Below are positions 1 through 29,318 of a DNA stretch of 64,000 nt, piece by piece. The number at the start of each line of letters is the position of its first letter. The first letter of the stretch is position 1. The translations under genes and the position numbers were made by a program. Source of the stretch: Macrostomum lignano (lineage: Eukaryota); contig NIVC01002127.1 in the NCBI GenBank assembly GCA_002269645.1, positions 1-64,000 of the forward strand, in the 5' to 3' direction. A model generated the notes under the pieces. It searched no databases. It was given only the letters and a program-made list of their open reading frames with translations, and was not told where the DNA came from.

Positions 1-3000
1 TAGATTGACGTGGCGCCGTCGCCAAAGAAACAATGAGAGATCTGTCTATAAAATGATTTGTTAAAATTTGTTTATATTCGAAACAGAAATTTGAATCGAA
101 CTTCAATTAGATAAAAGAAATTTGCTAATTATAGTTCTCACAGCAAGGCGTTGTTCCGAAATTTGTTATAACTGCTCAGCGTGATGATTCCACCCCAACC
201 GCTTGATAGGGAGAAAAATACCTGCGCAGATTGTTAATGAAAAGCATAATTTTAGGTCTAATATCCTGATGTAGATTAGGACCTATAGGCGTCGCATTTT
301 TTACGTAGAAGTAACAATTAAGAAGTTCAGGTTCAAATCGGCTAGGTTCTTTCCGTTCAGAAGGATACCACGGATACGTACTGGCACACGCTCACACAAG
401 GTGTACAGCAAACCTGACTTCCTCATTAGTCAGGCTCTGTGATTTTACGGGTTGACCCTCATGAGCATGAATTGCAGGACAAGCCGATCGCTAACTAAAG
501 ATCCGTGCTCGAGCCCCAAAAGTACTGTAGCTGCAGTCTGCGGAAGGGAACTCCTGTCAGGTACTTTGGTGAGGGATTCAGTGACTCTCCGCGTCTTCAA
601 GCTTCTCTGCTCAAGCCTCTACGACTCTTTAGCAATGCGTAGCCGAACAAATTTAGCTGTCAACAAAATTCACCTGCATCGCCGCGTCGCCCAAACGTTT
701 GCGTCGGCCAGCCTTTTGGTATGAAAAATAAGTCAAACCGTCGGAGCTGCCTTTCCAGAGTGAGTCCACGAATTAGCAGAACCGTGAGCACTAGGTACGG
801 GAATATACCCGTGAAGTACACGGCCTGCAGGTGATGAAAAATTGATGCAAAATTGGAGACTATACGATATTAAATGTTCTATTAAAAGATTAAACAGTCA
901 TAAACTTTTAAAAACAAAATATTAAGTACCACGCAGAGAGACGAAAATTTATTCAAAGTTCCTCTGACCTGCTCAAGTCGGTGCATTCTTTTGAGGATTT
1001 GAGGATTTGATTTGAGTTTAAAATCTGTAAAACAGTAAGGATCCAGTAATAAAGGTTTTGTATTTATTACACTATAATATTCATAGTTCACCATCTTTCG
1101 AAGTCGCTACATTGATAATTATATAAGGCACGGATTATCAATAGGATAGATGCAAAAAAACACGCCTGTGTAATAAATTTGATCGAGATAAAAAATCACA
1201 GATCAATTCATCATCCACAGAACATTTTTAGTGACATTGACTGTTGAAATAACAGGGTTGACAGGAGAACATTGGAACTAGACACGATCCAATGTACATG
1301 ATGTAATAGTATTGGCCAAGCAACCTAACTAAACAAAGTACTACGTCGCTATCCGTCGATGTAATGCAAAAGCAAATAAATATGTGTCATCGACGTCTAC
1401 AGACACTGGGGAACTTCGGCCGACAATTGTCTAATATTGTCGAATGGCAAGACCAGTTCACATAGTTATTTATGTTTTCAAACTCAATTCAATTTGCAGC
1501 GTCTACGTAGCAGGCGGAACCTTAGGAGAGGTGATCCTCAACAGGATGTGCAAAGTCTTTGCATCCCGTCTGCCGGGCCCCTTGCCAATGTCGAACTGGC
1601 ACTGGTGAAACTGTGAGCTGCGACAAAACTGAAAGTTCTTCTCTCGGAAATAGTTCACGATATCGCCGGAATCGTTCTCGCACAGGGCCACCAAGTCTAC
1701 TGTCACTCCAGTGCCGGCTGGGAAGCTGGACTCCTGCGACACCAACTTGAAAGTCCAGTTGTCGCACGACTTCTGATAGCCCATTTTCCAGTCGGCATCC
1801 CGGATGGGGCTCGGGACTGGACCGGATTGGGTGCGGATCTCAACCTAGAGCAGAAGGAAGTAAATTTAGCAACGCTTATAAAATACTGGCAGTACAGTAG
1901 TTATTAAAACAAACCACTTTGTAGAGCCTTCATCTCAGAAACGTAAGTTGCATGTTATGCCGTAGAGCCTTTGACCTTTAGAAAGGGAAAATCGATGTCT
2001 AGTCGTAGAGGCTTTGATCCCAGAAACGGAAACTCGATGTCTAGTCGTAGAGGCTTTGATCCAGAAACGGAAACTCGATGTCTAGTCGTAGAAGCTTTGA
2101 TCCAGAAACGGAAACTCGATGTCTAGTCGTAGAGGTTTTAATCCCAGAAACGGAAACTCGATGTCTAGTCGTAGAGGCTTTAATCCCAGAAATGGAAACT
2201 CGATGTCTAGTCGAATAACTTTGACCTTTTGACCCCAGAAACGGAAACTAGACGTCTTGTCCAGTTTTCGAAGAAACTTTGACCCAAAAACGGTATCTAC
2301 AAACCTCATCATAGAATTTTTGACCTCGAAACAAAGATCTGGAAGTTGGACGCCATTTACCTAAGAAATGGCAGTTGAAGATGATCTTGTAGAAGTAGAA
2401 CTTTGGTCCCATTTTTTATGCCTTTTCATAGAATTAAGAACTAAGAATCCGATATAATATTATGACCTAAGAACGGAGTCTAAATCTTTTATGTTAGTAC
2501 AAAGAAGCGAGTTCCCATCACTGAACTCATAAAGACTAAAGACACTTAATTTTTTCGACTATGGTCAACCAAGTCAACTAAACATTACTTCAAGTAGCTA
2601 CCAGCGGAGTATTGAAGTATCAACTAGGTATCTATAGGCGCATGTGGACATAGGAAAAGAAACTTAATTGAGAAATATCACGTGATCCACAGCCAAGTGG
2701 ACCTTCTCGCGAGGTCACTATTACTTGAAAAGAACGATAAAATAGAATAGCTACCGATGAAAAGCTTAAGCAAATATGAAAACACACTGCAGGGTAGCTG
2801 AAGCCAGTAAAGCAAGGTGGAGTAAAAAAAGCTGAAACTATAATTCATATTGTTTTTCTGTTAGGGCATTAATAATTGAATAGGCCAGTTAGGCCAGATT
2901 TGCCATCGACAGCTCAGCCGCAGCTATTACGCGACGCACCTGAAGGCTGCATACGGCTGTTCAGTCGCCACACACACCCTCAATTACCCCCAGCTAATGC

Positions 3001-5487
3001 TGGCACCCATTTTACAGCTGGGTGAACTGAAGCAATGCAGAGTTAAGTGTCTTGCTCAAGGACACAAATTGTTCCAGTGGGATCGGGAATCGAAACCCCG
3101 ACCTTAAGGAGAGTGCTAGTATATGTACCCTAGTTAATCCAAGAAGAACACGACTACCCTGCTGCTTAAGTGATACAACACTCTCATCTTGTGTCCCAGT
3201 TTAATTTTATTGATCAATTAATTACCTGCAAACCGAAGCGCATTGTGTTGCCAACTTTGATATTGTCCACAGCCAGGCACATGTAGCTTCTCGGTCGATA
3301 GAATTTACTAGAAAATTCGGCCTGTTGAGCTCGTGTTGCCAGGGGCACAGTGCTCTGTAGCGATAGGCTTTGGCGATCAAGTCGCCTAGGAGCTTGTTGG
3401 ACTCTTCCGTCTGACTGAGGCTGTAAAAATTAAATTTGGTCTTTGAAAAAACTTTTCTATCTCAGTGGTCCAGCGCGGCGCTCGATTCCAAGTGCAGTGA
3501 CATCAATTTGGGCTAAATTGGAATCTCGGCTTGGCTCTGTTCGTGCAATTCACATCCATGAGGCCAACCCCAAGGCACAGTGAAGTGTACATGCCTAACG
3601 ATAAATAAAGGTAGGGCCGCTGTACACTCTTATGTATGTGCCTGTGCGCATGACTGCCTACGTATCCTCCTCAGAGGAGTCGGCGGAATGGGCAGCAATG
3701 CTTCTCGTCGGTTGTGCGACAATGTCGCTTAAAGTGCGCCAGGGTACGTGTGCACACAGCCCCTGCCTCTAATAAAAAATACTTAGTTCTGGTACCGACC
3801 GTAAAATATGAAAATTAGTCTGACGTCTCTATGTCTCAGTCAGCCCAAGAGGTATTGCAAATGAAAAATCGATAGGCTTGAGTTGACGTAAGAGCTCAAT
3901 CTTATTCTCTTATAACCCTTTCAAAACACCTCGTAGTATTGATTTTATGGCTTTTATGGTTTGCTTGTTGATGAAGCTAAGTTCCTAAGACGAACTTTCA
4001 GTTGCAGAGTTAAAACCGAGTCTTCACCTCGATGACTCCAGCTCCCAGAGTTGTTTAGCCGACATCATCGGGAATCGAATCATTGGCAGCATCTCGACGA
4101 CGTATCGTTGAAATCTGTCGCCAACGCCCAGCCATGGCAGTAGCAGCTGTCGCAGTACAGCGTATTCGTCTTCTATCACCAGCTTGCCTGTGTGCAACAG
4201 GTCCCGGACGAAATCGGGACCAACCTCGAGAAACTCGTCCAGCTCGACAGCCTGTTTAGCATTCCAGCAGACGGTGTTAAAGCAGGTGGCTGCCAGTTTA
4301 TCCAGCTGCAGGTGTTTCGCCCAGGGATACCATAAAACGGCGTTGCGTATGTTTGGTGCTGGGCATTTTCCGTCATGAATTGCTCCGTCTGTTGTCTCAA
4401 CGACCACACCTGGTACTTGTCGGCTAGGCGTAGTAGGCCTGTGTTGGTGGAAGGAAAGATTTTCTATAGTTTACGGATGCGTTGTAAGTACATGTATGTA
4501 AGCATGGGTAGGCAGTTTAGTAGGTTAGGGAGGTAGGCTGAAAGATTGATAATAGACTTTGGTTTGTATCTGTTAGTAGGTTGTTAGATCGCACTGTAAT
4601 GTTATGCTGGTAGGTTGTTAAGTTAGTCGGAAGGCATTAATTAGATTGGTAAGTTAAGGTGTATGCGCAGAGTTGTGAATAAAGTAAAATAGTTTAGAGA
4701 TATAAAAATGTAGGAAGCTTAAAACAAAGAAAGTACATGCATATAAGGCCAATGCACTGATGTTCACTTTTTAACATTCAGAGGAATGATGTGTAGAAAA
4801 GTTAAAAATTGGGGAACTGTGGTCAGAGAACCTGACTGAATAGACTGAAACGCTACTTCAGGAGGCCTATATATAAGCCATGCACTAGCCAACAAATTTG
4901 CTTCTGTTGAGCGGAACTTCATAACACAACAGATGCAGTTAATTGAGTTCGTGTACGTCGGAGTTTCTGGGTTTGGGGTACCTGAAAGACTTCAGGTACT
5001 GAACGGAAGTAGGGAAAGCAACGACTTTATTGCATATCACACTCACCAATCGCCGTAGCCCTGTTAATAAAAACTCGACCAGCGTACAGGAAGCGCAAGA
5101 AATGCTCAAAGCACTGAAAACAGGCATCATCTTCGACCAGCTCGCACAGGCTTCTTTCAGCGGCGAAGTTGGACGAAGCGGACACGGACGGGGCCGGCCA
5201 GTTCGCGCTGTACAGAATCGTCCGGAAGAACTCGGACGACTTCGCTAGGACGAATTTGTGAGCGTGAAATTCTCGTTGCCGGAGCTGTGCAAATTGTCCG
5301 CCATTTTCGTTGCAATCTTCAGCTTCTTCCGAGCTCAGATCGTCCTCTTCTGAACGTCGAACAATGAGTAATAAATCACTGAGCTCTGACGAGTTGCAGT
5401 ACTGACAAATGTCCGAGACGAATCCTTCGGTGTCCGAGAGCTCCTCGCCGCTGTCGGTCCCAATGTCTGGTTTTGCCTGCAGCTTTA

Positions 5488-5540
<53 letters not shown>

Positions 5541-8500
5541 CTTTGCTGCATCACCGCCTTAGAGCTTCTATTAGAGTTGAATTCAATGCTAAGCGCATTC
5601 AATGGAGCTCTTCTGACAAATCCAGAGTGCTTTATTCGCCCCCTGTTTTTCCTGCAACTCTTGCTAGCAGCTGCAGGTAAATTAATTTTCTGCGCGCTCG
5701 TTTTACATTTTCAGGTTGGACGGCTTTTAGTCATGCGTGCAATCCGAAGCGCTTTTACGACTTTCTCTCATTCATTCTGGTACGAGCCGCGCACTACTAC
5801 CGTTCTTTGCTTCTTTCTGTCTCTATATTCCGTACTCTACTGTATTCTCTGCATATAGCCTAAAGCTACCCAAAATGATGAAACCCATGCGTTGCTTGTA
5901 TAATCTCGAGTTCAAGCCCCAGTTCTCACAATAGACACGCAGTGTTTGTTGGCACTCGGTTTACTTGCGTTTTGATTTCTATTCTGTACAAGAGAATTCT
6001 ATATTCGGCTTGCGCGAACCGTGCTGGGCTTTGCGTGGGATTGCAATGCTGGCCAAAAAACTTGGCTAGAGCACAAGTACCTCACTTTTGACGTGGAAGG
6101 AATTTCGAATAGTTTTCGATATTTATCTGACTGAATTGTTTTAAGTAAATTACAAAGGTACAAATTAAGTTATTCCATGGGTTTTTAAAATGCTTGTAAA
6201 GTTTAATTATTGATCAATGAATTTGATGAATTAAAAAATAATAATTGATTACACCTGCCCCAAATGGGCAGATGTGCAACCAACAGCTCAGCCGCAGCTA
6301 TTGCGCGGCGCATCTGAAGGCTGCGTACGGCTGTTCAGTCCAAGGACTGGGGGGTAGCCACACATACCCTCAATTACCCCAGCTAATGCTGGCACCCATT
6401 TTACAGCTGGGTGAACTGAAGCAATGCAGAGTTAAGTGTCTTGCTCAAGGACACAAATTGTTCCAGTGGGATCGGGAATCGAACCCCCGACCTTCAAGTC
6501 GTGAGACCGACGCTCAAACCACTAAGCTGCAACCCCCTGGATTAATAATTAATGATGAGTTAGTAATGAGGCAGTTACATGTAAATGAAATAATCATTTA
6601 GTATAATTTGATAATCATTCAGTAGAATCTGATAATCATTCAGTAGAATCTGACAAACATTAAAAGTAATTTATCGTTAGAATAAAGCTGATTATAAAAA
6701 AGTATGTTTAGATATATATTCTCTAAAATCACCACCAGTTTCATTTAGATATCTGTTGAAACATGTGAAGACCTAATGAGCTTACCGTGAGTGAATCAGA
6801 CTGTTCCATTCAGCGCTTGGATACTATAGTATGGTAGAATAATGTTTTTGCTAGTAGTTTATCACAAATAGTAGCAAAAAATGCTTAACGAATGCTTTAC
6901 ATACAGTTTATCGTTTTGTCAATGGTTAACAACTACTCATGTCTACTATTAGGTCAATCACTGGAACAGTAACGTTTGTTAAACTTCGGCCATGCCAACA
7001 CAATCTATCAATCATTGTTGGCTACATGTAACTCTTATTTGCAGAGGGTCGCCATCACAGATCCGAAATACATGTACATGTATCACAAACCGAAATATTA
7101 CAAACCGAAATATCCCAAACCCGAAATATAACAAACCCGAAATATCACAAACCCGAAATTTCCCAAACCCGAAATTTCCCAAACCCGAAATTTCACAAAC
7201 CCGAAATTTCCCAAACCCGAAATTTCCCAAACCCGAAACATCACAAACCCGAAATTTCCCAAACCCGAAACATCACAAACCCGAAATATCACAAACCCGA
7301 ACTATCCCAAACCCGAAATACAACAAACCCGAAATATAACAAACCTGAAAAATCACAAACCCGAAAAATCACAAACCCGAAAAATCACAAACCCGAAACA
7401 TCACAAACCCGAAAAATCACAAACCCGAAAAAGCACAAACCCGAAACATCACAAACCCGAAATATCCCAAACCCGAAACATAACATACCCGAAATATCCC
7501 AAACCCGAAATATCACAAACCCCAAATATCCCAAACCCTAAATATCCCAAACCCGAAATATAACAAACCCCAAATATCATAAACCCCAAATATCCCAAAC
7601 CTGAAATATAACAAACCCGAAATATCACCGAAATATCACCCAAAATATATATATGTTTGTGATGCCACCCCTTAGCAGATTAATAAGCAATGCAATACTC
7701 ACCTTACCAGCCGATTTAATGCCGCGAATCAGGCATATGACAACCACAATCCACGCTAGCAGCAGACAGACCACCAACTCCCATTTCGGTAGCCCCATAT
7801 TGTGGAAACCGTTCGATATGGACAGAACAAAATTGCTGAAATAAGAGTTTTAATATAGATGGAGTTCGTGCAGTTAATGAGAATCCTCAGGCCCTGTTAA
7901 CGGTCTTATCAGCACTCAACTGACACATTTATCACTTTTCTGAACTTTAGAATTCATCATATGATTCATCATATCATCAAAATGCCGACTTGCTTGCCAA
8001 GCTTCATCGACAGAATTTCTGAAACAGCTGCTTCTTTAATCGACCTTGCACAAAGCACAATTTTTGCTTAATCAAGCAATTTGGAAGTTTCGATAGACGT
8101 TGAGAACTGTGGATGATTTTGTGCAAATAAAACTAAAAAACTAGTCCTAGATCTTCATGCATTGCGTTAATGCATTTTGCAGCAAAGACAACCGCCCCGA
8201 TGTGTCATGGCACGAGAATCAGACGCGTGTACAGCTGAGCTGTTGCGGCATTTGCAGGATACTCACTGAAAGTACTCGTCGCTGGAGGTCTTGGGCGCGG
8301 GCACCGAGCCCAGAAAGTTATGCAGCAGGCTGGTATTCGTGGAGTTCAATGTCGTGGCTTCGTCGTAGAACGTCGACAAAGCGGGACCGTCGGGCGTGTC
8401 GTTTCCAGGAAACGGCCTCATGGCCCCATCCGAAGACTCCATCACCCAGCTGGCGTTGTTGGGCAGCAGGCAGCTATGGTTCAGAGCGAAGGCGAAGAAC

Positions 8501-11423
8501 CCGCCCTGACGCCTGCACCGATTTCGCTCCGACAAGGTGCGAATGTGCACGCAGTCGCCGGTGTTCCAGCTGGAGCTGCAGGTGGTCCAGGGCAGGTCGC
8601 CAGTCACTGAGCTGATGCTCTGCCAGAAGTAGAACATCGTCCAAGCGATCAGCATGTTGTAGTAGATGCTGCCGCAAAATGTGATGATAATCATCGACCA
8701 ACCGATGCCTGTTTTGTAAAAATGAGGGAAATTGTTGGAGTGCGTTACTGTTGTATATACAGTTCGGTTGACTTGCATAAAATTAGTAGATTGTGTTTTC
8801 TTAATGTTTAATGTAGTTAGGAATTTTAGTAAATATCCAGGGCGAACACAACGAGTCCTGAGAGGTTGCACGGGAGTGGGGAGTGAGTTGTCCACGTGAA
8901 TCATCATGTGATTGTGAGAGATGTCCATGAGAATCAGCAGGTGATTGTGAGAGATGTCCATGAGAATCAGCAGGTGATTGTGAGAGATGTCCATGAGAAT
9001 CAGCAGGTGATTGTGAGAGATGTCCATGAGAATCACCAGGTGATTGTGAGAGATGTTCACGAGAATCAGCAGGTGATTGGAGAGATGTCCATGAGAATTA
9101 CCAGGTGATTGTGAGAGATGTCCATGAGAATCACCAGGTGATTGTGAGAGATGTCCATGAGAATCACCAGGTGATTGTGAGAGATGTCCATGAGAATCAG
9201 CAGGTGATTGTGTGAGAGATGTCCACGAGAATCAGCAGGTGATTGGAGAGATGTCCACGAGAATCAGCAGGTGATTGTGAGAGATGTCCACGAGAATCAG
9301 CAGGTGGTTGTCAGAGATGTCCACGAGAATCAGCAGGTGATTGTGAGAGAAGTCCACGGGAATCAGCAGGTGATTGTGAGAGATGTCCACGAGAATCAGC
9401 AGGTGATTGGAGAGATGTCCACGAGAATCAGCAGGTGATTGTGAGAGATGTCCACGAGAATCAGCAGGTGGTTGTCAGAGATGTCCACGAGAATCAGCAG
9501 GTGATTGTGAGAGATGTCCACGAGAATCAGCAGGTGGTTGTCAGAGATGTCCACGAGAATCAGCAGGTGATTGTGAGAGAAGTCCACGGGAATCAGCAGG
9601 TGATTGTGAGAGATGTCCACGAGAATCTGTGAGAAAATAACATCGGTCATGAATATTTTTAATGCAAAAGTTAATGTTATGTAAAATGTTTAAGGTCAAG
9701 CAGCAACAATAATTTTGTTTTGGCCGCAAGTAAAAGAACCAAAAGAAAGAGTTGGAGCCTGAGTCCGGCTTGTTATCAAGTAGGATGAGGCATGGAGGTG
9801 AGTATACCTCGTACTAGGGTTGGCGAAAAGAAACTGCTATCACATACGAGCTACCTGCTCAAACATATTAGCGCGGGTAATAGAAAACCCAGCAGAGTTA
9901 AAGCATTCAAGCTTAACAATAAATGCTTCATTTTTGGCTCTCGCGTTCAAGAGACACACCCCCAAAAACACTTAGGCACATTAGCTATGCATATAGAAGC
10001 TGTACCTCTGGGTGTGCATCTTGCTTTTTATTGTTGAACTCGGCAGAAAATTCCAACTCAACTTGATGCAAAACAACTATATTGAGAGGAGAGCACGTGA
10101 CCCTTGAGTTCGCCAGAGTTGGTTTCGCTTTTTGAGTGCGGCCGACCTAAGATATAGCGGTGCCAAACTACATGTAAAAGACAGGGACACCCATGGAAGA
10201 TAGGGACACCCACCTAAGAGACAGGGACACCCACCTAAGAGACAGGGACACCCACCTAAGAGACAGGGACACCCACCTGAGAGACAGGGACACCCACCTA
10301 AGAGACAGGGACACCCACCTAAGAGACAGGAACATCCAGAAGACAGGGACACCCACCCAACAAGAGACAGTGGCGCCCACCAAGAGAGCCACTGTGTTTT
10401 CCCCGGAACCCACTTATGGCATAAAATGCATGTTGGTATCATATTTTATTGACTTCTATAAGTTTATTCTCACCTGTAAACAGAGGGCTAGCCTTCCACA
10501 CGGTGATTGGTCCTGTAGCTGAGTACTGTCCAAAGCAGGTCTCCATGTAGAGCAATGGAATGCCCACGGTGAGCAGCATGATGAGGAACGGTAGAAGGAA
10601 CGCGCCGCCGCCATTCTGCCATAAAGATTTGGGCAACATTTTTACAATTATTTCTTCTGCATTAGACTACTCTCGATCATATTTTCCACTTAGATCCGAT
10701 GTACTACACGAAATTGCTTTTAGAGGCTCTCTGTATTCGACATTCATGCTAATTAAGACGCGCGTGCCTAGTTCGAGGACTTCTGAACTTTTTAACGGTA
10801 CGTTTTTTTCAGAGAAAGTAGACAATTCGACAAAGAAAATTTTACGATCGAAATATACAGGTAATTCCTAGAAATTTCCCGTGTAGCTGAACCTCACTCT
10901 GTTATTCACGGTAACACTAATTATCCAGGTGTAGCTGAACCCTCACTCTGTTATCTTCACCAATTATCCAGGTGTAGCTGAACCTCACTCTGTTATCTTC
11001 ACTAATTATCCAGGTGTAGCTGAACCTCACTCTGTTATCTTCACTAATTATCCAGGTGTAATGTAACTGAACCCTTACTCTGTTATCTACGCGGTAAACC
11101 CAATTATCCAGGTGTAGCTGAACCTCACTCTGTTATCTTCACTAATTATCCAGGTGTAGCTGGAACCCTACTCAGTTATCTACGAGCTGCATATACATCA
11201 ATTATCCAGGAATAATTAGTCCTCATTCACTTATACTCTGCAGACCAATAATTAATATATGCCTCACCTTGTAGCACAGGTATGGAAATCGCCAAACATT
11301 TCCCAGTCCCACGGCATAGGAGATGCAGGAGAACAGGAATTCTGCTTTACCGCCCCAGGAGTCACGCTTTCGCTCAGCAGTGTCGGCCAGCAGATCTGGT
11401 TGCTGCGTCTCTGGCTGCTGCAT
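1..11423 (-). CDS. SLC6 Na+/Cl--dependent amino-acid transporter (GlyT/ATB0,+-like), paralog A; 3' part runs off the window, distal exons carry indels
   Basis: Exons with AG/GT borders and consistent phases: 11268-11423 ([27 protein letters not shown]), 10474-10615 (NGGGAF..), 8267-8708, 7703-7835, 674-824, 142-221 ([11 protein letters not shown]..), and a partial exon at about 1-42. Exon sizes match paralog B except 674-824 (151 vs 159 nt: 7-nt deletion plus homopolymer indels), the broken partial exon at 1-42, and the 156 vs 159 nt N-terminal exon. Could be a pseudogene or assembly error. Confidence 0.85.
1503..5602 (-). CDS. BTB/POZ-BACK protein, BTBD17-like, with N-terminal polyQ; two apparent single-base deletions
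   Basis: Exons 5047-5602 ([22 protein letters not shown]), 4028-4438 ([19 protein letters not shown]), 3226-3420 (FYRPRSY) and 1503-1844. Splice phases only join if one base is restored in exon 2 (about 4360) and one in exon 3 (about 3330). Confidence 0.85.
1960..2260. repeat. Minisatellite, 41-42-bp unit
   Basis: cgatgtctagtcgtagaggctttgatcccagaaacggaaact tandem copies. Confidence 0.9.
2909..3105 (-). mobile_element. SINE family A, 5'-truncated copy
   Basis: Near-identical to 6283-6495, lacking the A-box part of the head and a 17-nt segment. Confidence 0.8.
6283..6536 (-). mobile_element. tRNA-derived SINE with CORE-like central domain (family A), with head
   Basis: Head with A box (TTAGTGG) and B box (GGTTCGATTCC), followed by TGTGTCCTTGAGCAAGACACTTAAC..CTGTAAAATGGG, which resembles the MIR/CORE domain. 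Confidence 0.8.
7085..7645. repeat. Minisatellite, 16-bp unit
   Basis: aaacccgaaatatcac variants. Confidence 0.95.
8915..9630. repeat. Minisatellite, 33-bp unit (SLC6-A intron)
   Basis: gtgattgtgagagatgtccacgagaatcagcag; same unit at 19930-20452. Confidence 0.95.
10178..10385. repeat. Minisatellite, 21-bp unit
   Basis: gacagggacacccacctaaga; its reverse complement resembles the 44.3-45.0 kb array. Confidence 0.9.
10880..11205. repeat. Minisatellite, ~42-bp unit
   Basis: ttatccaggtgtagctgaacctcactctgttatcttcactaa. Confidence 0.9.
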
Positions 11424-13563
11424 CTGTTAGTCAGTTAATTTCAATAAGTAAGGAATTATCTATAAATTGCTTTCAATATTTGCATGGAATATCACTTTTA
11501 TCGCAATCAAACGGTGATTCATTTCAACTGATCGCTAAAAAAGTGTCTTTAACGCAGAACTTCATTTTTTGTGCAAAAATTATATTACAATTTATAGCCA
11601 GTACAATTATCCAGAAAACTTTTTGTGAAACTATAAGCTATATCCTATTCATATTTTCGATTATTAATTTGCACCATAGTTTTTTGTTGTATTTTGCATG
11701 TTTTGTGGCTTTACCTAAATGAAGCAATAATAAAATAAATAAATAAGTCTTCTATTTACAGAAAATAAAAGCTTGAACATATTATAAAGAAATTTCTGAC
11801 TTTTTAAGTAAGAACCATAAATTTTTAACCTGAAAAGTGTTATATTATTTAGATTATTTAACTAAAAAATTATAAACCAAAAATATCTCCAAAAGTACCC
11901 AAAGCAAAACTTCTAAGGCGCCTTGAGGAATATCAAATTAAAGCAGGCTAAAATAATTACTTACATTAATCTTTTGGCAACTGAAACATCAATTCAAAAG
12001 TGTTTCGTACATTAAAAAAACAAATTTGCTTAAAATATTACCTCCAATTCATCATTGATTGGAGCAGTAGGTTTGTCACGGAAACTCATGTTTGCTTGCG
12101 AGCTGCCAGAAAATTACAGGTCCTTTTTTTAACCGATTGGAGCAGCTTTGTATCTGAAATCTGCAATGCTCGTAAATTTTCTAGAAAATCGGCTTAAACG
12201 CACAATCAGTTATTTTAGTATCAACGCATGCACAGAGCCAGACTGTAAAACTAAGTCTGCTTTTAATGCATCACGGAGTCGAAAAGCCATTCAGAATCTT
12301 AAATTTTTGTATTTGCTATCGTGAGAAGTGAGTGATATACTTTGAAGCAAAAGAAAAATGTAAATATTACAAATTTTAGCAAGCGGCTGTTTATTTTATC
12401 CGTGCCGTAGTTTAGAATAGATTTTACTATATATTTTGTTATACATGTTGCTTTGCACGGTATAATATTTAGTTGAAATTTTAATTCGTTGACAATATGC
12501 TTTGCACAGTTCCAAATGGTTAATTATAAAATGGTTCCTTTTTTAATATTTTAGAACGGGGTAAACTTATGAACTAAGTTGTAATGAACATATACAAAAA
12601 TATTCCAATAATGATTGTTTTCCCCGCTTCCTTATACGACATTAACAAGCCGTGTGCCCTAAGTATTTGTTATTTTCTTTATTTGATTAAAATAAGTATT
12701 GAAAGCGTTTAGTAACAGAATTAAACGCACAAAAATTCATTCCTGACAATGAGAGGTCTGTCAAAATGTGGGCTTTCTATATATTTGCACAGACACGTAT
12801 ATTTTTGTTTTACACACACTGTGTCACTATATATAAGTGAGAAACACAGCTGTCAGCTGAATAATTTTTGATAAAATACAACACTTTTTATTAACTACTT
12901 GATGCTGAAAGCAGAATAAAATAGAGCGAATGTCTAACAGAGAGAAAACTTAGTAAAATATTTTTGAGAGACAGTACAGCAAAACTACACAACTGTTGCA
13001 CGAACGATTCGGTGGATTTAATGTAATTAAAAAGGGACGACACGATGACCATTTTTAACACTGCTTAATTAAGGCGTATTTGACGAATCTACAAAAAGTA
13101 TATGTTTGATGGGATACTAATTTCCCACACGATAAAAAATAAAAGAATTCCAGCTGACGGCAAGCATGCTGAATTAAATTTGCAAAACAAATAACAGAAA
13201 CCAATGTGTCAAAGCTGAAAAAGCAACAATTAAACCAAGGGTTGTTCACTTTGTTAAAATGATCATTTTTCTGTTTTTTTCATTTTTTCATTTTGTTACT
13301 TGACGTCCAGCAGAGGATCTTGTTGAAATCTCGGCTGTTCTAATTAAAATGAATGAATAGGGTAAAAATTGTGATGCGCTGTCTCGATCGAACTGAACTG
13401 CTTCTACGCGTTTGCCCAAACGAAACTGCGAAAGGAGCAGCAGCAGCAGCAGCTTTGAGTAACGCTGAGCACACGCCGAGATGAACCTAATGATCGAGAG
13501 GACGAGGGAACGCTCTGTTGGGTCCCGTCGATCTCTCGTCAAAGTCCCAACCGGTTCGGATCC

Positions 13564-16500
13564 CTAAACATTGACGCCACCGCCTCGAAGGATTCGCAAG
13601 AAACGCGAATCGGTAGACGCGCCAATGTTAGCCCCGTTGTTGCTGACGCCGGAGACACTCTGGAGCACAGAGTTCGTCAGCGGTTGCTGCAACAGGTTTG
13701 TTTTAAAAAGATCACTTATCCGGTCCCGTAAGAATATAGACGCTTGCTACGAGTGTCAGTCGTCAATTTGAACAGAACAGTGCCTAAAAATAGTCAAGGA
13801 CTACTCAAGTACAAGGACGGGAAACCACGTTTCTTGGAACATTTTAGGAGGCTGGTTTATGGAGATAGGAGGTTTCACAAAAATCGTTATTGCTTCTGAT
13901 ATAAAGGAGACCCAATGCTTATCTTTTGATATGCTTTGCATTTCTTAACAGGCTCTATTGATATTCATAAAGCTTTTAGTTTGAAAAATTAGGATTCTGC
14001 GTACAATCTTACATTTACTGTGTCTAAAATGGTAAAAACCTGGCTCCGTAAATTTTCCAAGAAGCGTAGTTTCCCGTCCTTCTACCTGAGTAAGTCTTTG
14101 ACTATTGACTACAATGTCGAAGGTTTCAAGCCAGCGTTCCACTCTACAACAGTGTGCTGAAAAGTTTAGATTAAAAATTCCTATTTTTATGATCCTGCAT
14201 GGTTTGGTTGACATGTTGACACGGACGCAAATCAAACGGACAGTCGTTCCAAAGCCAGCGAACACACCAACAGTCATAACAGATACGTACGCAGGCACAC
14301 ACTCCCACAGGATGCACATCGTCATTCTTGGTTATCAAGCGCACGAGCCTCTAAAATTTGATCCATTTGACGTTACTCACCTGGGACGTCTCGAACGGCA
14401 GTCCGTCGCCGTTCATGTCTTCGTTGCCGACTCTGGAACGGCGGCGGACCTTCTTGCCCATCTCGCGGCCCCAGCTGCGGTGGGGCAGCATCAGGCTGTG
14501 TATCTTCTGTTGGAAATAAGAAAGAGTATGACTGAGCATGCTTAAAAAGAACACTTTTTGGTCTGGGCGCGTCGCCACCGGGGGGGGGGACAGAGGGGAC
14601 ATGTCCCCCCCCAGTAAAATCTCTGGGGGGACATGCCAATGCTTTGTTCCCCCACCCCATCTTGTGAGTCGTTGTGGTAATCAATAATGTTTCTTCAGGG
14701 CGCCGAAATATAGCGCCTTCGGCGCCAAAATGAGTGCCTTCGGCGCCAAAATGAGTGCCTTCGGCGCCAAAATGAGTGCCTTCGGCGCCAAAATGAGTGC
14801 CTTCGGCGCCAAAATGAGTGCCTTCGGCGCCAAAATGAGTGCCTACAGCGCTAAAATGAGTGCCTACAGCGCCAAAATGAGTGCCTGCGGCGCTAAAATG
14901 AGTGCCTGCGGCGCTAAAATGAGTGCCTACAGCGCTAAAATGAGTGCCTGCGGCGCTAAAATGAGTGCCTACAGCGCTAAAATGAGGGCCTGCGGCGCTA
15001 AAATGAGTGCCTACAGCGCTAAAATGAGGGCCTGCGGCGCTAAAATGAGGGCCTGCTGCGCTAAAATGAGTGCCTGCTGCGCTAAAATGAGTGCCTGCTG
15101 CGCTAAAATGAGTGCCTGCAGCGCTAAAATGAGTGCCTGCGGCGCTAAAATGAGTGCCTACAGCGCTAAAATGAGTGCCTGCGGCGCTAAAATGAGTGCC
15201 TACAGCGCTAAAATGAGGGCCTGCGGCGCTAAAATGAGTGCCTACAGCACCAAAATGAGTGCCTGCTGCGCTAAAATGAGTGCCTGCAGCGCTAAAATGA
15301 GTGCCTGCGGCGCCAAAATGAGTGCCAAAATTTAGTCATGTACATGTACATGTTGAATTCTTGGCTTTGTCCCCCCACTTGGCTTTGATCCATATCGACG
15401 CCTCTGTTTTGGTCATTAGCCGGCCTAAGCCCCATTATTAAAAAAAAGGTTTTATTGCTGTGAAAACAGCCCATGCCAATCATCAGTACGTAACGACAGT
15501 TCGAAGATTTCCCATTTGATAAATCTGATGTCAAGAACTACGTTTATCGAAATATCAAATCACGGTCTGATTTGATAAATGTAGTGCTGCCCATTCCGCT
15601 CACTCCTGAGCACCGGCTTCATCAACGGCTAGTATACATTCACATCAAAACTAGACAACTCTTTCTTACCTGCTTCAGCGACATGTTGCCCTTCAACGTG
15701 ACAACTTTATAGATAGCAACTCCAGGTATTGGCATGACAACAAGCATCGAGATCACCCAGCCAGTAATATCGGCGCTCGGCGGAAACTCGTACAGGCCGT
15801 ACTTTGACGGCTTAATCGACGTGAAGGTGAAAATAGCCACAGAGACGAGTACCAACGGCGAGAAGAACTGCCAGACAATTCGCCAGAAGACTCGGGACTT
15901 TCGAATAAAAGGGTTCATTTCCTCGATGTTGTCTAGAAAATTGTCAGCTCCGTACACCCAGGTGATGACTACCAGCTCTAGGAATCCAACCACGAGAACA
16001 GAATAGGTGCAGCTGTAGTTATCCAGCAGTTGCAGAACGAACATTCCACCCTGAATAATAATAATATAATTAGCTTCAAGTGCTCGATAGTCTGTTCAAA
16101 CTAATTTTCAATTCTCGATGGAACGGAATATTGAGAAGCTTTAAGTCTTATCATAGATATTTGTCTGAGAATTTTGGTTGCAGTCAAACACAATAGATAG
16201 CACCAGGAGCTTGAGCACCAGGAGCTTGAGCACCAGGGGCTTTAGCACCAGGGGCTTTAGCACCAGGGGCTTTAGCACCAGGGGCTTTAGCACCAGGGGC
16301 TTTAGCACCAGGGGCTTTAGCACCAGGGGCTTTAGCACCAGGGGCTTTAGCACCAGGGGCTTTAGCACCAGGAGCTTGAGCACCAGGGGCTTTAGCACCA
16401 GGGGCTTTAGCACCAGGGGCTTTAGCACCAGGGGCTTTAGCACCAGGAGCTTGAGCACCAGGGGCTTTAGCACCAGGGGCTTTAGCACCAGGGGCTTTAG

Positions 16501-19500
16501 CACCAGGGGCTTTAGCATCAGGGGCTTTAGCACCAGGGGCTTTAGCACCAGGGCTTTAGCACCAGGGGCTTTAGCACCAGGGGCTTTAGCACCAGTGGCT
16601 TTAGCACCAGGGGCTTTAGCACCAGAGGATTTAGCACCTGGGGCGCCAGCACCTGGGGCGCCAGCACCTGGGGCGCCAGCACTTGGGGTGCCATAACTTT
16701 GCTACTCATCTGCTCTATCTTATCACGCGGTCTATTCAGTGTGTGTCCAAAACCTAATTTAATGAGCCTGAGCTAAAAAACATAAGCTTCAGAACCATCT
16801 CGCACCCGAGTTGTGCAGGGCAGGCCACAGACAAAGGCCAGCAGGCAGATGGCGCAGAGCACAATGAAAGGCCGTTTGCCGATGCTAAGGTGCCGGCTCC
16901 AATTGTCGCACACGGATGTAACCAGCGTGTTCACATTGGCAATCATGGTGCCAAAGCCGAGGGTGAGCAGCATGCCAAAGAATAGAGCGGCCCACAGCGG
17001 CGACACGGGCATCGAAGTCACAATGTCCGGGTAGAGAATAAAGGCCAAACCGGCGCCTGAAATCATGCCAAATGTTCCTTCATCGATATATAGAAACTTT
17101 CAAGACCGAATGAGCATCTCACCATCCTTGGCTACTTCGTCGATGGGCACAGACATCACGTGACTCATGTAGCCGAGCACGCAGAAGACGGTCATACCGG
17201 CATAGATTGACGTGGCGCCGTCGCCCAGTGACACCAGAAGGGAGTCACTGAATATTGATTTATTTTTAATTCGCAAAATTGCTTCAAAATACTGGCTGTT
17301 TTTGTAAGCCGCTATGCTCATATCAAGGTAAAATATATAAAATATGAGAAACTCACAGCAAAGCGTTATTATGGAATTTATTGTAGCTGCTCAAAGCGAT
17401 GATGCCGCCCCAGCCGCTGGCTAGGGAGAAAAACACCTGCGGAAAATGTTGTTATTTTTTGTAGATTTCATTTAGCTGACTCAGGCTGTCAGAGAAAAAG
17501 TACAAAGTGTACCTGCATCGCGGCGTCGCCCCAGACCTTCGCGTCGGCCAGCCGATCCCAGTTGGGAATGAAAAAGTACTCCAAACCCTTTGAGCTGCCT
17601 TCCAGAGTGAGTCCACGAATCAGCAGAATAGTGAGCACAAGGTATGGAAACAACCCTGTGAAATACACAGCCTGCAATGTAAAAAAAATTTCTTTATCAT
17701 TTAAAGAGTTGAGATTTGATAGATGTTTTCTGTGTTCTTATTAAACACAATAAATATAGATCAAATTTTCCGTGTGGTCTACTGCTGGGCAGTAGTCTGA
17801 TGATGATAGTGCAATATTATCATACCAGGTATGTTCCCGTGACCTCTAAATGTATAAAATCTGGCCAAAGTTAATTCACATGTATGCTATTTAGGTAAAT
17901 GAACTGTAAATTTACACAAATCAAATGCAAACTAATTATTAAGTTTTGTATATTTCTGATGGGTTTTTTATTCAGTCACACGCCAGCAACACTTTTAGTG
18001 TGAATCAAGCCGGCTAAGCTTTATAAACCGGCGATACATCTAGCTTGTTATTTGAATAAACTTTATACTCTTCTTAGTCCTAAGAGTCTAGAAGCTAATA
18101 AAAACTGTAAGAGAGAGAGAGTGGTCAGCCAGATCAAAGTCGGGCAGATTTGTATCAAAGTAGGTCAACGGTCAAAGTGTAATTGAGCCTAGTAGCTGTG
18201 GGGTACCTCTAGGGAATTTTCTGTAAAGATATGCGACTTTTATTTCTTGATAACCACTGGATATATTATTCGACAATAAGTTCGAGCAACAGCGAGGGGC
18301 TTTATCAAACTCAAATCTTCACAAACTCAAATCTTCACAAACTGGAATCTTCACAAACTCGAATTTTCAAAAACTGGAATCTTCACAAACTCGAATTTTC
18401 ACAAACTTGAAACTTCACAAGCTCGAATCTTTACAAACTCGAATCTTCACAAACTCGAATCTTCACAAACTCAAATCTTCACAAACTCGAGTCTTTACAA
18501 ACTCGAATCTGCTCGAAAAAATGCTCGCCTTTGAAAAGCTTCTAATTATCTATTAATTACAGCCCCGTCGCTGCAAAAATGTCTATGGCCAAAAAACCAT
18601 CTGAATCAGTGCAAAGTCATTGGCATGAGACTCAGTTCATGCCACAGATTCTATTTACCCCTAGATGGGCCACTCCAACTGCGCAATAAAACATCATTTG
18701 CCGTGTTGACTGCTAATTGCTACGTTGATGATGCATTGCTAGTCACACTAGAAAAGTGCAGTGCAAATTTACGTGTAGGAGAATAACTGCAGTGGGGTAG
18801 TCGACCAGTAGAAAGCGAGGAGGCAACTGCACTCGTGCCTCTCACGCTCACACAAGGTGTACAGGGGGATCGAATGAAACTCACTTTTCCAGCAGATTTA
18901 ACTCCCCGAATCAGGCAGAGGATCACCACAATCCAAGAGGCCAGCAGGCAGAGGACCAGTTCCCATTTCGGCAAGCCCATCTCGTGAAATCCGTTTGAGA
19001 TAGACAGGACGAAGTTGCTGGAATATAGCGGTTAAAAAGTTAATAGCCAGGTACAGTGTTTCAAAGAGCATTAAGTTAATAATAATATGCTTGTAGTTGC
19101 GCTGACGCAATTCTGCACATTCCGCTGACTCCTGAGTCAGAGTGCAGGCACAGCACTCATACACACGCTCACTCAGGGTGTACAGCGGCAATGAATTTCT
19201 AATCTTGCAGGCATGTCTAAAGACAACCCACCCTGAGAAGTCATGGCATGTACAGCTAAGCTGTTGCGGAATTTACGGGCTACTCACTGAAAGTACTCGT
19301 CGCTGGAGGTCTTGGGCGCGGGCACGGAGCCCAGAAAGTTGTGCAGCAGGCTGGTATTCGTGGAGTTCAACGTCGCGGCTTCGTCGTAGAATGTCGACAA
19401 GGCGGTACCGTCGGGCGTGTCGTTTCCAGGAAACGGCCTCATGGCCCCATCCGAAGACTCCATCACCCAGCTGGCGTTGTTGGGCAGCAGGCAGCTGTGG

Positions 19501-22500
19501 TTCAGAGCGAAAGCGAAGAACCCGCCCTGACGCCTGCACCGATTTCGCTCCGACAAGGTGCGAATGTGCACGCAGTCGCCGGTGTTCCAGCTGGAGCTGC
19601 ACGTGGTCCAGGGCAGGTCGCCAGTCACTGAGCTGATGCTCTGCCAGAAGTAGAACATCGTCCAAGCGATCAGCATGTTGTAGTAGATGCTGCCGCAAAA
19701 TGTGATGATAATCATCGACCAACCGATGCCTGTTTTGTAAAAATGAGGGAAATTGTTGGGAGTGCGTTACTGTTGTATATACAGTTCGGTTGACTTGCAT
19801 AAAATTAGTAGATTGTGCTTTCTTAATGTTAAATGTATTTAGGAATTTTAGTAAATATCCAGGGCGAACACAACGAGTCCTGAGAGGTTGCACGGGAGTG
19901 GGGAGTGAGTTGTCCACGTGAATCATCATGTGATTGTGAGAGATGTTCACGAGAATCAGCAGGTGATTGTGAGAGATGTCCATGAGAATCAGCAGGTGAT
20001 TGTGAGAGATGTCCATGAGAATCAGCAGGTGATTGTGAGAGATGTCCATGAGAATCACCAGGTGATTAGAGAGATGTCCATGAGAATCAGGTGATTGTAT
20101 GAGAGATGTCCATGAGAATCAGCAGGTGATTGGAGAGATGTCCATGAGAATCAGCAGGTGATTGGAGAGATGTCCACGAGAATCAGGTGATTGTATGAGA
20201 GATGTCCATGAGAATCAGCAGGTGATTGGAGAGATGTCCACGAGAATCAGGTGATTGTATGAGAGATGTCCATGAGAATCACCAGGTGATTGGAGAGATG
20301 TCCATGAGAATCAGGTGATTGTATGAGAGATGTCCATGAGAATCAGCAGGTGATTGTGAGAGATGTCCATGAGAATCAGCAGGTGATTGTGAGAGATGTC
20401 CATGAGAATCACTAGGTGATTAGAAAGATGTCCATGAGCATCAGCAGGTGATGACAAAATTGGAAATAAAGTTCTAGTTTATTACTAGCAATCTAGTGCC
20501 CCCTTCGGGGCGCCCAATAAGCAAGGGACAAAAATTATTTATGTGAACCCTTTTTCCTTGAGCGATTCTCCGCATGAGCCTTGACATCACAGTTTATTTA
20601 TTCAAATATTAGACCTGTATGATTACATAGATTGTTGTTGTAATAGCCACTTGATGGTCATATTAGTCTTGGTTAGGACATTAATTAGGTCAGACAATGT
20701 GTCCAATGCTTCCAGGGTATAGTTCACCCCCGCCCAAGACCAGGCAATTGGTCTTAGTCTGTTGGAAATATTCCATGGAAAACTAAAAAAAGACGTCGTA
20801 AAGGCTATGTAATTGAAGGCTGCACATAGCCCCCTAGTCATCAGGGGGTATATGAGTATAATGAGAGAGAAAAGTTCAACAGAACACTTCTGCACAGCGG
20901 GTGCAGCAGCAGCAGTAGCAATAGCAGCACGAGCTGTGCTCATGACGCGACAAGGCAGCAGTCTCGCAGACAAAGAAAGAGACAAAAAAATAGTCGGTAA
21001 ATAACTAGAAGCCCTTGAGATTCTAAAGACTCCTGCAGTAGGGTAGCTGTCAGACTCTCTCAAACAACCCCCCTCCATGGCTAAGGCTGTACGTCTCTCT
21101 GTCTCGTTCTCTTCCACTGTAATTTTATTTTAGACTGGCCAAAATATGAATGGAAAACTACTGAGGAAACTGAGTAAGGGTGGAGAGAGGGACGCCCGCT
21201 CTTTACTTAGCCGTGATTTTCCTAGATAGATAATAGTATAGAAATTAGAGCCAAGGATTACTAGAAACAATATTAATCTGGAGCGGAAACAAAGTACACT
21301 TATACAGTGTTTGATCATTCGGTATTTTTTATGCAAACATTAAAGCCAACTTACTATTTAGCCTTATTTGTCTCACGAGGCTCCAAGTTTACAAAATTCG
21401 GTGCACCTAAGATGACGTCTGCATGATGTCTGAAAATGGGAACCTTTAGCAAAGGTCTCTTGCGGCACTCCGCTACTAATATTTTAAGCTAAGGCCGTAT
21501 GGGCCATGCGTGAGAGCATGAATCATCAACCCAAAGAGTCATAAACCATGAAGATTCTACGAATCTAAGGGGAACAGGGCTGGCTGTCTTTGTTAAAGGT
21601 TGTTGTAATCTTCAATGCTAAAAAGTCGATTGCACGGGTTTTCAACGGTTTGAACAGTAGGAATACCAAGCATTTTTCTGACCGTTGTTAAGCTACCAAA
21701 GGGGTAGGGGATTCCCACCATCTGACATTTTTTCGCTGCGCCAAAACGGAAAAAAAGCAAAGCACACGAAATTCAACAACACGGGCTAACTTTTTGTTTT
21801 GCACCTTCTCAAACAGGAATCAAGTCGCCAGCCCTCTGGACCGTCGAGATATTCGATAATTTTTGCCAGAAGGTCAGATTTAGTGTATTCAGTACACCCC
21901 TGTGCGCCAATCAGCACTGCACCTCATTGCAGCCTTGCCAAGCCTCCAAATTTCATCAGCACGTCGACCATATGGGTCTGCATCAGCTCTGATTTCGTTG
22001 GTCACTGGCCTTCACCCAGGCGGAGCTTTTGGACCTTCAACAGGTAAAACCAGGTGACAATGGACACCCTGTGCGAATTTTCTAGTTTCGCTGATCAAGC
22101 CTTGACAGTGGGCAAACCTCAACTGCTTGTGAAGCTTGTGGATTGTGAATTTTGCCTTTGTTTGGAAATAAAAAGCTGTCAAGTTGAATAAAGTTCAATT
22201 TAGGTGTAGAGACATCCTGCTACATTCTTACCTGTGAAAAGTGGGCTAGCCTTCCACACAGTGATTGGTCCAGTGGCAGAGTACTGGCCAAAGCAGGTCT
22301 CCATGTAGAGCAGCGGAATTCCCACAGTCACTAGCATGCAGATGAAGGGTAGCAGAAAGGCGCCTCCACCATTCTGTTGTATTTTAATCAATAGTAAAAG
22401 TCATTTTGTTAGAATTGTATGGTAAATTTATTTGAATTATATCAATTGCACTGACTAACCAATTAAAAAAATTAATACATATTATTCAAAAAAACATTTG

Positions 22501-23447
22501 GGATATTTAAAAATATCATTTAAAAACAAAATCAGTACTATGGCAATAAAAATATTAGCTTTAATACTAATAAAACTGATAAAGATATTAAAAATGCATC
22601 TATAAATTCATATTTAATGATTTAAAACTCTAGAAAAGCTAAATTCTAAAGAGAACTACCAATATCACTAATATGAACAATTCTATAATATAATTCTAAA
22701 ACTAACTAGAACTATTTAAAATCTATATATTTGATGTACAATAAGGTTGGACAATAACATTCAATTAAGATCAAATGTATCTATAGAAGAATCATGCAAA
22801 ATCAATAAATTAATTTACCTTGTAACACAAGTAGGGAAATCGCCAAACATTTCCCAAGCCAACAGCATAGGAGAGGCAAGAAAACAGGAATTCCGCTTTG
22901 CCACCCCAGGAGTCCCTGGTCTGCTCCTTGTCCTTGGATTCACCTTCTTCTGGTACTGGCTGTTCAGCAAGATTCATCTGTTGATAGATAAGCATAATTA
23001 ATAAGCATTGTTAATTTTTTATTGCATTTAATAATTTTTTTCTTGAAACAAACAAGAATTACTGGTAATGTTTCCTTTGATAATAATAGAAAATTAAGAT
23101 TAATTATTTTTTTTTATATGCAAAAAGATGTTTATTCACATTTAATTTGACTATTTTTGTACAGTGACAATGTGGTTTCTATTACAATAGCTTTTGAGGA
23201 GCAAATATGAAATTTAGAAAGAGAAAATGGGGATTTATTAAGGAAGTATATTATAAAATTTCTTCTGAATTTATGTGATTTGAATACATATAAGAGTAAG
23301 TTCAGTGTTTTTTAGGAAAGGAACTCTATTCTATTTGAAACTAAATGTCTATGTATATATATGACAAATCTTGAAGATTATTTTCAAAATATAGCTTACC
23401 TCAAAGTCGTCAGCAATAGGATCAGATTGTTTTTTACTTAAGCTCAT
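13564..23447 (-). CDS. SLC6 Na+/Cl--dependent amino-acid transporter (GlyT/ATB0,+-like), paralog B, complete, about 722 aa
   Basis: Exons 23400-23447 (putative first, [16 protein letters not shown]), 22819-22977, 22232-22373, 19288-19729, 18885-19017, 17513-17671, 17357-17436, 17123-17247, 16806-17056, 15670-16050, 14381-14506, 13564-13686 join in frame (2169 nt). Motifs: TM1 [25 protein letters not shown]2 [16 protein letters not shown]6 [34 protein letters not shown]. The first and last exons are less certain. Confidence 0.92.
13797..14100. repeat. Imperfect ~60-bp inverted repeat pair (old MITE?)
   Basis: 13797-13855 (actactcaagtacaaggacgggaaaccacg..) matches the reverse complement of 14040-14100 with mismatches; no TSD found. 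Confidence 0.5.
14564..15406. mobile_element. Possible hAT-like MITE enclosing a 21-bp minisatellite
   Basis: Direct repeat ttttggtc at 14556-14563 and 15407-15414; degenerate inverted ends (TGGGCGCGTCG vs CAGAGGCGTCG) with G-run subterminal tracts. Confidence 0.45.
14710..15330. repeat. Minisatellite, 21-bp unit
   Basis: gcctgcggcgctaaaatgagt variants. Confidence 0.95.
16198..16690. repeat. Minisatellite, 15-bp unit
   Basis: caccaggggctttag. Confidence 0.95.
18305..18510. repeat. Minisatellite, 16-bp unit
   Basis: caaactcgaatcttca variants. Confidence 0.9.
19930..20452. repeat. Minisatellite, 33-bp unit (SLC6-B intron)
   Basis: Same unit and same intron position as 8915-9630. Confidence 0.95.
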
Positions 23448-29285: not shown

Positions 29286-29318
29286 CCCGCATATTTAAGA
29301 GCATTCCGAAATTCGAGC

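Follow-up and report, generated by a model that had tools for sequence, protein, structure and literature searches.

Evidence for recurrent interlocus gene conversion between two old tandem SLC6 paralogs of Macrostomum lignano

Two tandem transporter genes and their homogenised blocks

The window analysed here, the first 64,000 nucleotides of contig NIVC01002127.1 in Macrostomum lignano assembly GCA_002269645.1 (Mlig_3_7), is AT-rich (43.6% GC), contains no N, and carries two transporter genes, copy A and copy B. They lie in tandem, head-to-tail on the minus strand and ~11 kb apart, with copy B upstream and copy A beginning ~1.5 kb downstream of the copy B stop codon. Judged by sequence similarity, both are members of the SLC6 family of the glycine/proline-transporter-like type. 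The copy B model, which corresponds to NCBI protein PAA60651, matches Pfam PF00209 (SNF) over its full length (609.9 bits against a cut-off of 27, E = 5e-183), and the best matches of its product in the PDB are GlyT2, GlyT1 and the proline transporter. GlyT2 (9km2) aligns with residues 13-154 and 240-643 (E = 3e-157) and is collinear with copy B over the transmembrane (TM) core. The subject of this report is a mosaic of near-identity between these two otherwise strongly diverged genes, which was very probably produced by recurrent interlocus gene conversion, in at least two tracts and at differing ages.

An extra upstream coding exon was found in both copies and is numbered 0, so that exon 3 is the fourth coding exon. 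By the GlyT2 alignment, TM3 and almost the whole of extracellular loop 2 (EL2) are encoded in exon 3, as the original prediction had proposed; EL2 is unusually long, and ~85 of its residues have no alignment to GlyT2. Of the 442 nt of exon 3, 10 differ between the copies, as do 33 of the 133 nt of exon 4, the latter mostly at silent sites; these figures reproduce the counts from which that prediction started. The ten sites are exon nt 128, 218, 233, 324, 329, 338, 354, 359, 389 and 404; eight of the changes are synonymous and two are non-synonymous (P/T and T/A), compared with 24 synonymous and 9 non-synonymous differences in exon 4. By the Nei-Gojobori method, which also gave the exon 4 counts, synonymous divergence (dS) is 0.086 in exon 3 and ranges from 0.71 up to saturation in the remaining window exons (Fisher P = 1.4e-18). 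The observation that seven of the ten differences crowd together far from the intron-2 minisatellite also holds: all seven occupy an 81-nt stretch at the array-distal end of the exon (scan statistic P = 0.011; mean-position test P = 0.014).

The similarity continues beyond the exon on both sides. Upstream, a 176-nt unique stretch of intron 2 differs between A and B by 3 substitutions and 1 indel. Both this intron segment and the adjoining minisatellite had been described as nearly identical; the description is accurate for the intron but not for the minisatellite, since the two window arrays are positionally homologous only in a partial repeat and the first four repeats (variants aaac in A, maan in B). 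No A/B alignment was obtained past the far ends of the two arrays. Downstream, the first 40 nt of intron 3 contain 6 differences, and homology then fades over a 15-nt indel; a longer tract in intron 3 was rejected, because the 29-nt match past the indel scores 15 against a shuffle maximum of 16. Tract 1 is a block of ~0.85 kb that runs from the fourth minisatellite repeat through the proximal intron and exon 3 to ~40-85 bp into intron 3, and it ends inside the intron-2 minisatellite. In the window its A/B divergence amounts to 2% for the intron and 1% for exon nt 1-320, and rises to 6% for exon nt 321-442 and 15% for the beginning of intron 3.

Exon 3 is not, as had been claimed, the only homogenised exon. 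The window copy of A stops at the contig start, and the missing part was supplied from contig NIVC01000839.1, which is 98.5% identical to window copy A and separated from it by 47 indels, mostly of 1 bp. A second tract, in exons 7 and 8, was found when NIVC01000839.1 9347-9673 was aligned with window B 17225-16899: 7 differences in 327 nt without a gap (97.9% identity). Its residues make up what we take, from the general SLC6 topology, to be TM7, EL4 and TM8. Intron 7, for which the A copy lies off-window, differs at 4 of 66 nt (~94% identity), and the parts of exons 7 and 8 outside the tract are ~60-73% identical. The tract edges are sharp; they lie within the intron-2 array and, for tract 2, within exons 7 and 8. 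No shared minisatellite was detected at the edges of tract 2, either with Tandem Repeats Finder (TRF) or by alignment. The remaining introns, apart from the proximal part of intron 2 and intron 7, are unalignable or at most 73% identical. The statement that the other introns do not align is thus not wholly accurate: intron 7 is an exception, and so is intron 4, where the minisatellites of the two copies are ~70-73% alike.

Across the full coding sequence (CDS), tract 1 has a dS of 0.086 and tract 2 one of 0.032, against 1.19 for the 368 codons outside them. Ks is thus strongly non-uniform, from 0.03 to >1 within a single gene pair. The longest identical CDS runs measure 131, 99 and 96 nt, whereas the longest run in permuted data averaged 42 nt; a run of 131 nt was reached in 0 of 10,000 permutations, and one of at least 96 nt in 0.02%. 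We also observed that the start of NIVC01002127.1 falls exactly on the 5' edge of tract 2, within exon 7 of copy A, and that NIVC01000839.1 ends 229 nt past the copy A intron-2 array, so that contig breaks coincide with homogenised blocks.

Table 1. Positions of the genes, homogenised blocks and repeat arrays; coordinates refer to the window unless another contig is named.
Feature	Position	Strand	Description
Copy A exon 3, tract 1 core	8267..8708	minus	10/442 nt differ from copy B; same as A in NIVC01000839.1 and NIVC01004226
Copy B exon 3, tract 1 core	19288..19729	minus	Identical to B copy in NIVC01004226
Copy A intron 3 start, tract 1 fade-out	8183..8266	minus	B match ~19218-19287; weak 29-nt match past 15-nt indel
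Copy A putative young converted segment	8709..9051	minus	Intron 2 unique part (8709-8884), partial repeat and first four repeats
Copy B matching segment, putative donor type	19730..20072	minus	Proximal intron 2 and first four repeats
Tract 2, copy B side	16899..17225	minus	Exon 7 3' 103 nt, intron 7 (66 nt) and exon 8 5' part
Tract 2 start visible in copy A	1..23	minus	23/23 nt identical to copy B 17203-17225; contig begins here
Copy A intron-2 minisatellite	8885..9627		33-bp unit, 22.5 copies; distal two thirds of A-private variants (TRF, repeat-variant maps)
Copy B intron-2 minisatellite	19907..20452		32/33-bp unit, 16.9 copies; private e, h, i variants (TRF, repeat-variant maps)
Intron 4 16-bp minisatellites	A 7081..7628, B 18306-18510		~70-73% identity; internal contrast to the intron-2 arrays
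Copy B, SLC6 / GlyT-like gene	13564..23447	minus	Intact, 12 coding exons; GT-AG introns throughout, open reading frame (ORF) unbroken
Copy B exons 0-5	23400-23447, 22819-22977, 22232-22373, 19288-19729, 18885-19017, 17513-17671	minus	
Copy B exons 6-11	17357-17436, 17123-17247, 16806-17056, 15670-16050, 14381-14506, 13567-13686	minus	Stop codon follows exon 11
Copy A, downstream tandem paralog	1..12089	minus	Truncated by contig start within exon 7; exon-by-exon alignment to copy B
Copy A exons 0-4	12042-12089, 11268-11423, 10474-10615, 8267-8708, 7703-7835	minus	
Copy A exons 5-7	674-824, 142-221, exon 7 start near 45	minus	
B, A5'/B3' chimera and A on NIVC01000032.1	1-28914		Protein P0125 = PAA93181

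Probable layers of exchange among contigs and arrays

The age of tract 1 was assessed by comparison with other contigs of the assembly, using an eight-sequence alignment and pairwise counts that cover three loci of this one assembly. The contigs are NIVC01000839.1 (L001), which encodes an intact A-type protein, P0003 (PAA76169); NIVC01001983.1 (L002), which carries a third paralog, C (P0004); NIVC01000032.1 (L003); and NIVC01004226 (L005), which carries both B and A, its A copy being the same as that of L001. The DV1 line possesses three subgenomes with ~1.4-2.4% SNP divergence (PMC10733133). The contigs that share the locus are probably homeologous copies, and the three documented subgenomes would account for there being several of them.

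In exon 3 the window A copy equals L005 A and the window B copy equals L005 B, with 0 differences in each case. Because the ten A/B differences are common to the window and to L005/L001, they are old and predate the split of these contigs. The proximal intron shows a different pattern. In L005 the A and B copies differ there by 9 substitutions and 1 indel in 180 nt, but window A differs from L005 B by only 1 substitution and 1 indel in 180 nt, and from its own counterpart, L005 A, by 10 substitutions and 2 indels. Since window A is of the B type in the proximal intron and unlike its own counterpart, a B-type segment appears to have replaced the A-type intron in the window. The 3' edge of this segment falls between 8714 (intron position -6) and 8581 (exon nt 128). 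The single recent tract originally proposed therefore gives way to two layers: ten exon 3 differences found on two contigs are old, and the identity of the intron and proximal repeats, private to this contig, is probably younger. We regard tract 2 and the older layer of tract 1 as secure, and the young B-to-A layer specific to NIVC01002127.1 as probable.

Within the proximal intron the sequences group by contig and not by paralog. All three copies on L003 have the A-type proximal intron, yet the copy in the A position has B states at exon 3 sites 233-404 and in early intron 3, and a variant at exon 3 site 183 is common to the three L003 copies only. Repeated conversion running in more than one direction would produce such a distribution. 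The middle copy of this contig is a chimera with A-type exons 0-2 and B-type exons 3-11, its junction lying between exon 3 nt 128 and 376. A chimera flanked by both parental types, with the junction inside the homology block, is the pattern expected of unequal crossover, seen here on a single draft contig in which a mis-join is possible. The locus may have been triplicated long ago by unequal crossover, or else homeologs may have been wrongly joined at the homogenised block.

The intron-2 arrays differ widely among the copies. Seven arrays of the draft assembly were mapped, and they range from 3 to 24 repeats with variant maps that are all different. The seven repeats that make up the whole A array of L005 (eheheie) recur as repeats 3-9 of that contig's B array, and in L003 the chimera and the A copy have the repeats ub in common. 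At each of the three loci the array has thus been touched by a recent inter-paralog exchange of its own. The position of the shared slice varies among the three loci compared, comprising the four exon-proximal repeats in the window but lying inside the array in L005. Away from the array recent exchange becomes rarer, reaching the proximal intron at 2 of the 3 loci, and the 3' end of exon 3 and early intron 3 at 1 of the 3.

The TRF output for the window comprised 44 rows, among which overlapping rows stand for one and the same array. The 33-bp unit occurs nowhere else in the window and nowhere in locus C, and the idea that it is a dispersed repeat was rejected for those two regions. The 16-bp minisatellites of intron 4 adjoin the unconverted exon 4, and their identity exceeds the neutral expectation at dS ~1.2; an exchange of intermediate age or constraint on the arrays is a possible explanation. 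Elsewhere in the window, distant minisatellites share repeat families at ~75-80% identity (28345-29292 with 56544-56977, and 10176-10387 with 44333-45025 in inverted orientation), which points to dispersed families of minisatellites, perhaps borne by mobile elements.

Paralog C offers a view of an unconverted relative. Its exon 3 peptide is 50% identical to those of A and B, and its exon 3 equivalent (L002 12195-13887) is split by an extra intron with an (AACACC)n array. Its excessive divergence (50% amino-acid identity in EL2) and the split exon led to its rejection as an outgroup for polarising the exon 3 changes. GC-biased conversion was considered because GC at third codon positions is 0.82-0.84 in exon 3 and ~0.6 in the neighbouring exons; this was set aside, as the unconverted paralog C has 0.74-0.83 there. 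A (GTTA)n microsatellite starts exactly at a splice donor both in copy A intron 8 (L001 from 9767) and in paralog C (L002 21084-21148), apparently after different exons.

Copy A is absent from the NCBI annotation of NIVC01002127.1. Its exon 5 measures 151 nt against 159 as a result of indels of +1, -1, -7 and -1 (net -8), which break the frame and lead to a stop in exon 6 if the gene is spliced like copy B; in exon 7 (window 1-45) there is a compensating +1/-1 indel pair relative to the intact A allele on L001. The exon 5 indels are missing from L001, and the window sites are mostly of homopolymer type and at most 0.8 kb from the contig end. These indels are either a null allele or consensus error near the contig end. 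We make no claim that copy A is a pseudogene, given frameshifts so close to the contig start and the existence of an intact A allele (PAA76169). The gene models of the locus include a further irregularity: UniProt A0A1I8GB13 (896 aa) is a read-through fusion that joins the whole of copy B to copy A exons 1-3 by way of B exon 11 and intergenic DNA.

The 6.9-kb intron 4 of copy A contains a BTB-BACK gene on the same strand (4176-5551, minus; ORFs 5030-5710 and 4027-4470), with Pfam matches to BTB (1e-8) and BACK (5e-11) and an NCBI model of 255 aa. Intron 4 of copy B is just 1.2 kb long and lacks this gene. Direct repeats of ~215-230 bp with 88% identity (2892-3105 and 6266-6494) bracket the nested gene, which suggests that it came into intron 4 within an inserted element or segment.

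Conversion and its alternatives

Why should blocks of two genes be so alike when the codons between them have diverged towards saturation? We consider recurrent, multi-tract interlocus gene conversion of differing ages between two old tandem SLC6 paralogs very probable. Conversion as the cause, already favoured by the original prediction, is borne out by the homogenisation of silent and intronic sites (dS 0.086 against ~1.2), by the sharp edges and by the clustering by contig. The repair mechanism that we infer would act on an ancient duplication whose synonymous divergence is now near saturation. A break in one copy would be repaired with the paralog 11 kb away as template (interlocus, or ectopic, gene conversion), and each event would overwrite a few hundred bp, with exon, intron and silent sites treated alike. 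Tract 1 would then be layered. An older event would have left the ten locus-specific exon 3 differences, and a younger B-to-A event, on this contig only, would have re-homogenised the proximal repeats and the 176-bp intron. Two such nested layers would produce the divergence gradient seen across tract 1 in the window.

Several points weigh against this explanation. Mlig_3_7 was assembled with Canu from the PacBio reads of a hexaploid-like line and polished by Pilon with DNA and RNA-seq reads, and in later work 36% of its scaffold length was classed as chimeric between subgenomes. Because of the chimeric scaffolds and the Pilon polishing, some of the fine mosaics, especially the young tract and the L003 arrangement, could be consensus artefacts. 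The repeat units of L003 are 97-97.7% identical, which fits an old duplication and a homeolog mis-join equally well. The B-to-A direction is a parsimony inference from three loci only. Given the frameshifts of copy A, perhaps not both genes are functional here. Taken further, the same concerns become a rival explanation in which the entire mosaic is an artefact of assembly or polishing, either a collapsed or mixed consensus or the correction by Pilon of one paralog with reads, including RNA-seq reads, of the other. The polishing procedure and the chimeric scaffolds known in this assembly would permit it, NIVC01002127 starts in tract 2 and NIVC01000839 ends just past the A array, and overlapping contigs are separated by many 1-bp indels. 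However, A-type and B-type exon 3 states recur on independently assembled contigs, B-type amino-acid states recur in an ML2-based UniProt model, arrays and flanks are locus-specific, and the tracts span introns and stop within exons. Cross-mapping, moreover, cannot make identity out of the 20-25% divergence of neighbouring exons, and we give a wholesale artefact little credence. Purifying selection alone, holding exon 3 and exons 7-8 similar, would be in keeping with a dN/dS (non-synonymous to synonymous divergence) that is low throughout (~0.04-0.07), but it has a negligible probability: synonymous sites and introns are homogenised too, and identity shifts abruptly inside exons.

The history first proposed was a single recent event, begun by a break in the shared minisatellite, that homogenised exon 3 alone. 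Tract 1 does end in the array, divergence in the window does climb with distance from it, and the seven-site cluster (P ~0.01) is of the kind that such an event would leave. Against it stands tract 2, equally similar and elsewhere in the gene, and the combination of exon 3 differences on two contigs with an intron identity that is private points to at least two events of different age, making a single event improbable. Exchange is commonest at the minisatellite, and an initiating role for it is plausible, although the array may simply mark the loss of positional homology. As an active initiator, the array would be a break-prone hotspot from which tracts spread with falling frequency, as at human minisatellites. 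Every contig has recent exchange touching the array (the proximal repeats of the window, eheheie in L005 and ub in L003), the arrays span 3 to 24 repeats, recent exchange declines from array to proximal intron to exon 3 to intron 3, and minisatellites have often been noted beside human conversion tracts (PMC3966225). Yet tract 2 has no shared minisatellite, the other intronic minisatellites of the pair, such as those of intron 4, lack converted flanks, and the L003 chimera junction lies in exon 3 nt 128-376, outside the array; the comparison covers three loci of one assembly, in which array lengths from PacBio continuous long reads are unreliable. An active hotspot of this kind is a serious possibility, if somewhat short of an even one. 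It is close to an even chance that the minisatellite is passive, conversion beginning anywhere in the similar block and array turnover erasing positional homology. A passive array would fit the rapid decay of identity within the array after four repeats, the peak of identity centred at the junction of intron 2 and exon 3, a chimera junction inside exon 3 and not the array, and the origin of tract 2 without an array; it would leave unexplained why each of three loci has a recent array-involving event of its own. The stronger proposition, that the intron-2 minisatellite is a true recombination initiator in a flatworm, repeatedly seeding both paralog conversion and unequal crossover, we regard as rather unlikely.

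Relation to known systems and significance

Recurrent conversion between these SLC6 genes would place them beside well-studied tandem duplicates in which interlocus conversion occurs, among them the human gamma-globin genes, RHD/RHCE, CYP21A2/CYP21A1P and the red/green opsin genes. A systematic signal of interlocus conversion has also been described in human segmental duplications (PMC3790853). The M. lignano pair resembles the human tandem duplicates in that old paralogs carry short mosaic tracts of a few hundred bp that include introns and silent sites, the copies are near each other (11 kb, in tandem), and tracts of several ages occur together. It differs in that M. lignano is a neopolyploid flatworm with events of its own at each of three probably homeologous loci. 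The L003 contig is reminiscent of FUT2/Sec1-type loci, where a conversion tract overlaps a non-allelic homologous recombination junction (PMC3966225), because the converted block holds the A5'/B3' chimera junction. Unlike FUT2/Sec1, the M. lignano chimera comes from one draft contig whose units are 97-97.7% identical, so that a mis-join is possible.

The hypervariable human minisatellites MS32, CEB1 and MS31 undergo polar, conversion-driven turnover beside a hotspot. Like them, the 33-bp array of M. lignano is variable in length, with variant repeats common across loci, and in the window exchange appears concentrated at one array end with co-conversion of the flank, whereas the slice shared in L005 is internal. 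Unlike them, the exchange in M. lignano takes place between paralogous loci and not between alleles. Within the transporter family, the two copies share with the GlyT2/GlyT1/PROT branch the full-length SNF domain, the GlyT2 alignment over residues 13-643 and the EL2 motif LPW..C...WNT.DC; they depart from that branch in ~85 lineage-specific EL2 residues, the loop being 50% identical even to that of the third paralog.

A full-text literature search retrieved no earlier account of gene conversion in Macrostomum, and the paper on its subgenomes (PMC10733133) is silent on conversion. The locus is a fresh instance of a well-known process, clear but ordinary concerted evolution, and it provides a clean, well-bounded mosaic in a species that serves as a model for regeneration and whose genome is difficult to assemble. 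For studies of this family in the flatworm it has two practical consequences. Trees or Ks dating of A and B will mislead if the converted exons are kept in, as Ks runs from 0.03 to >1, and the near-identical blocks are an annotation hazard, coinciding with contig breaks and with fused or chimeric models (A0A1I8GB13, P0125). Should a role of the array be confirmed, this inbred line, with its three subgenomes, would offer natural replicates for measuring ectopic conversion after polyploidisation. If the array does initiate recombination, it would have kept TM3 and EL2 of two ancient transporters identical while giving rise to chimeras and copy-number differences among the three subgenomes, and the locus would offer a tractable invertebrate system to set beside the human minisatellite hotspots.

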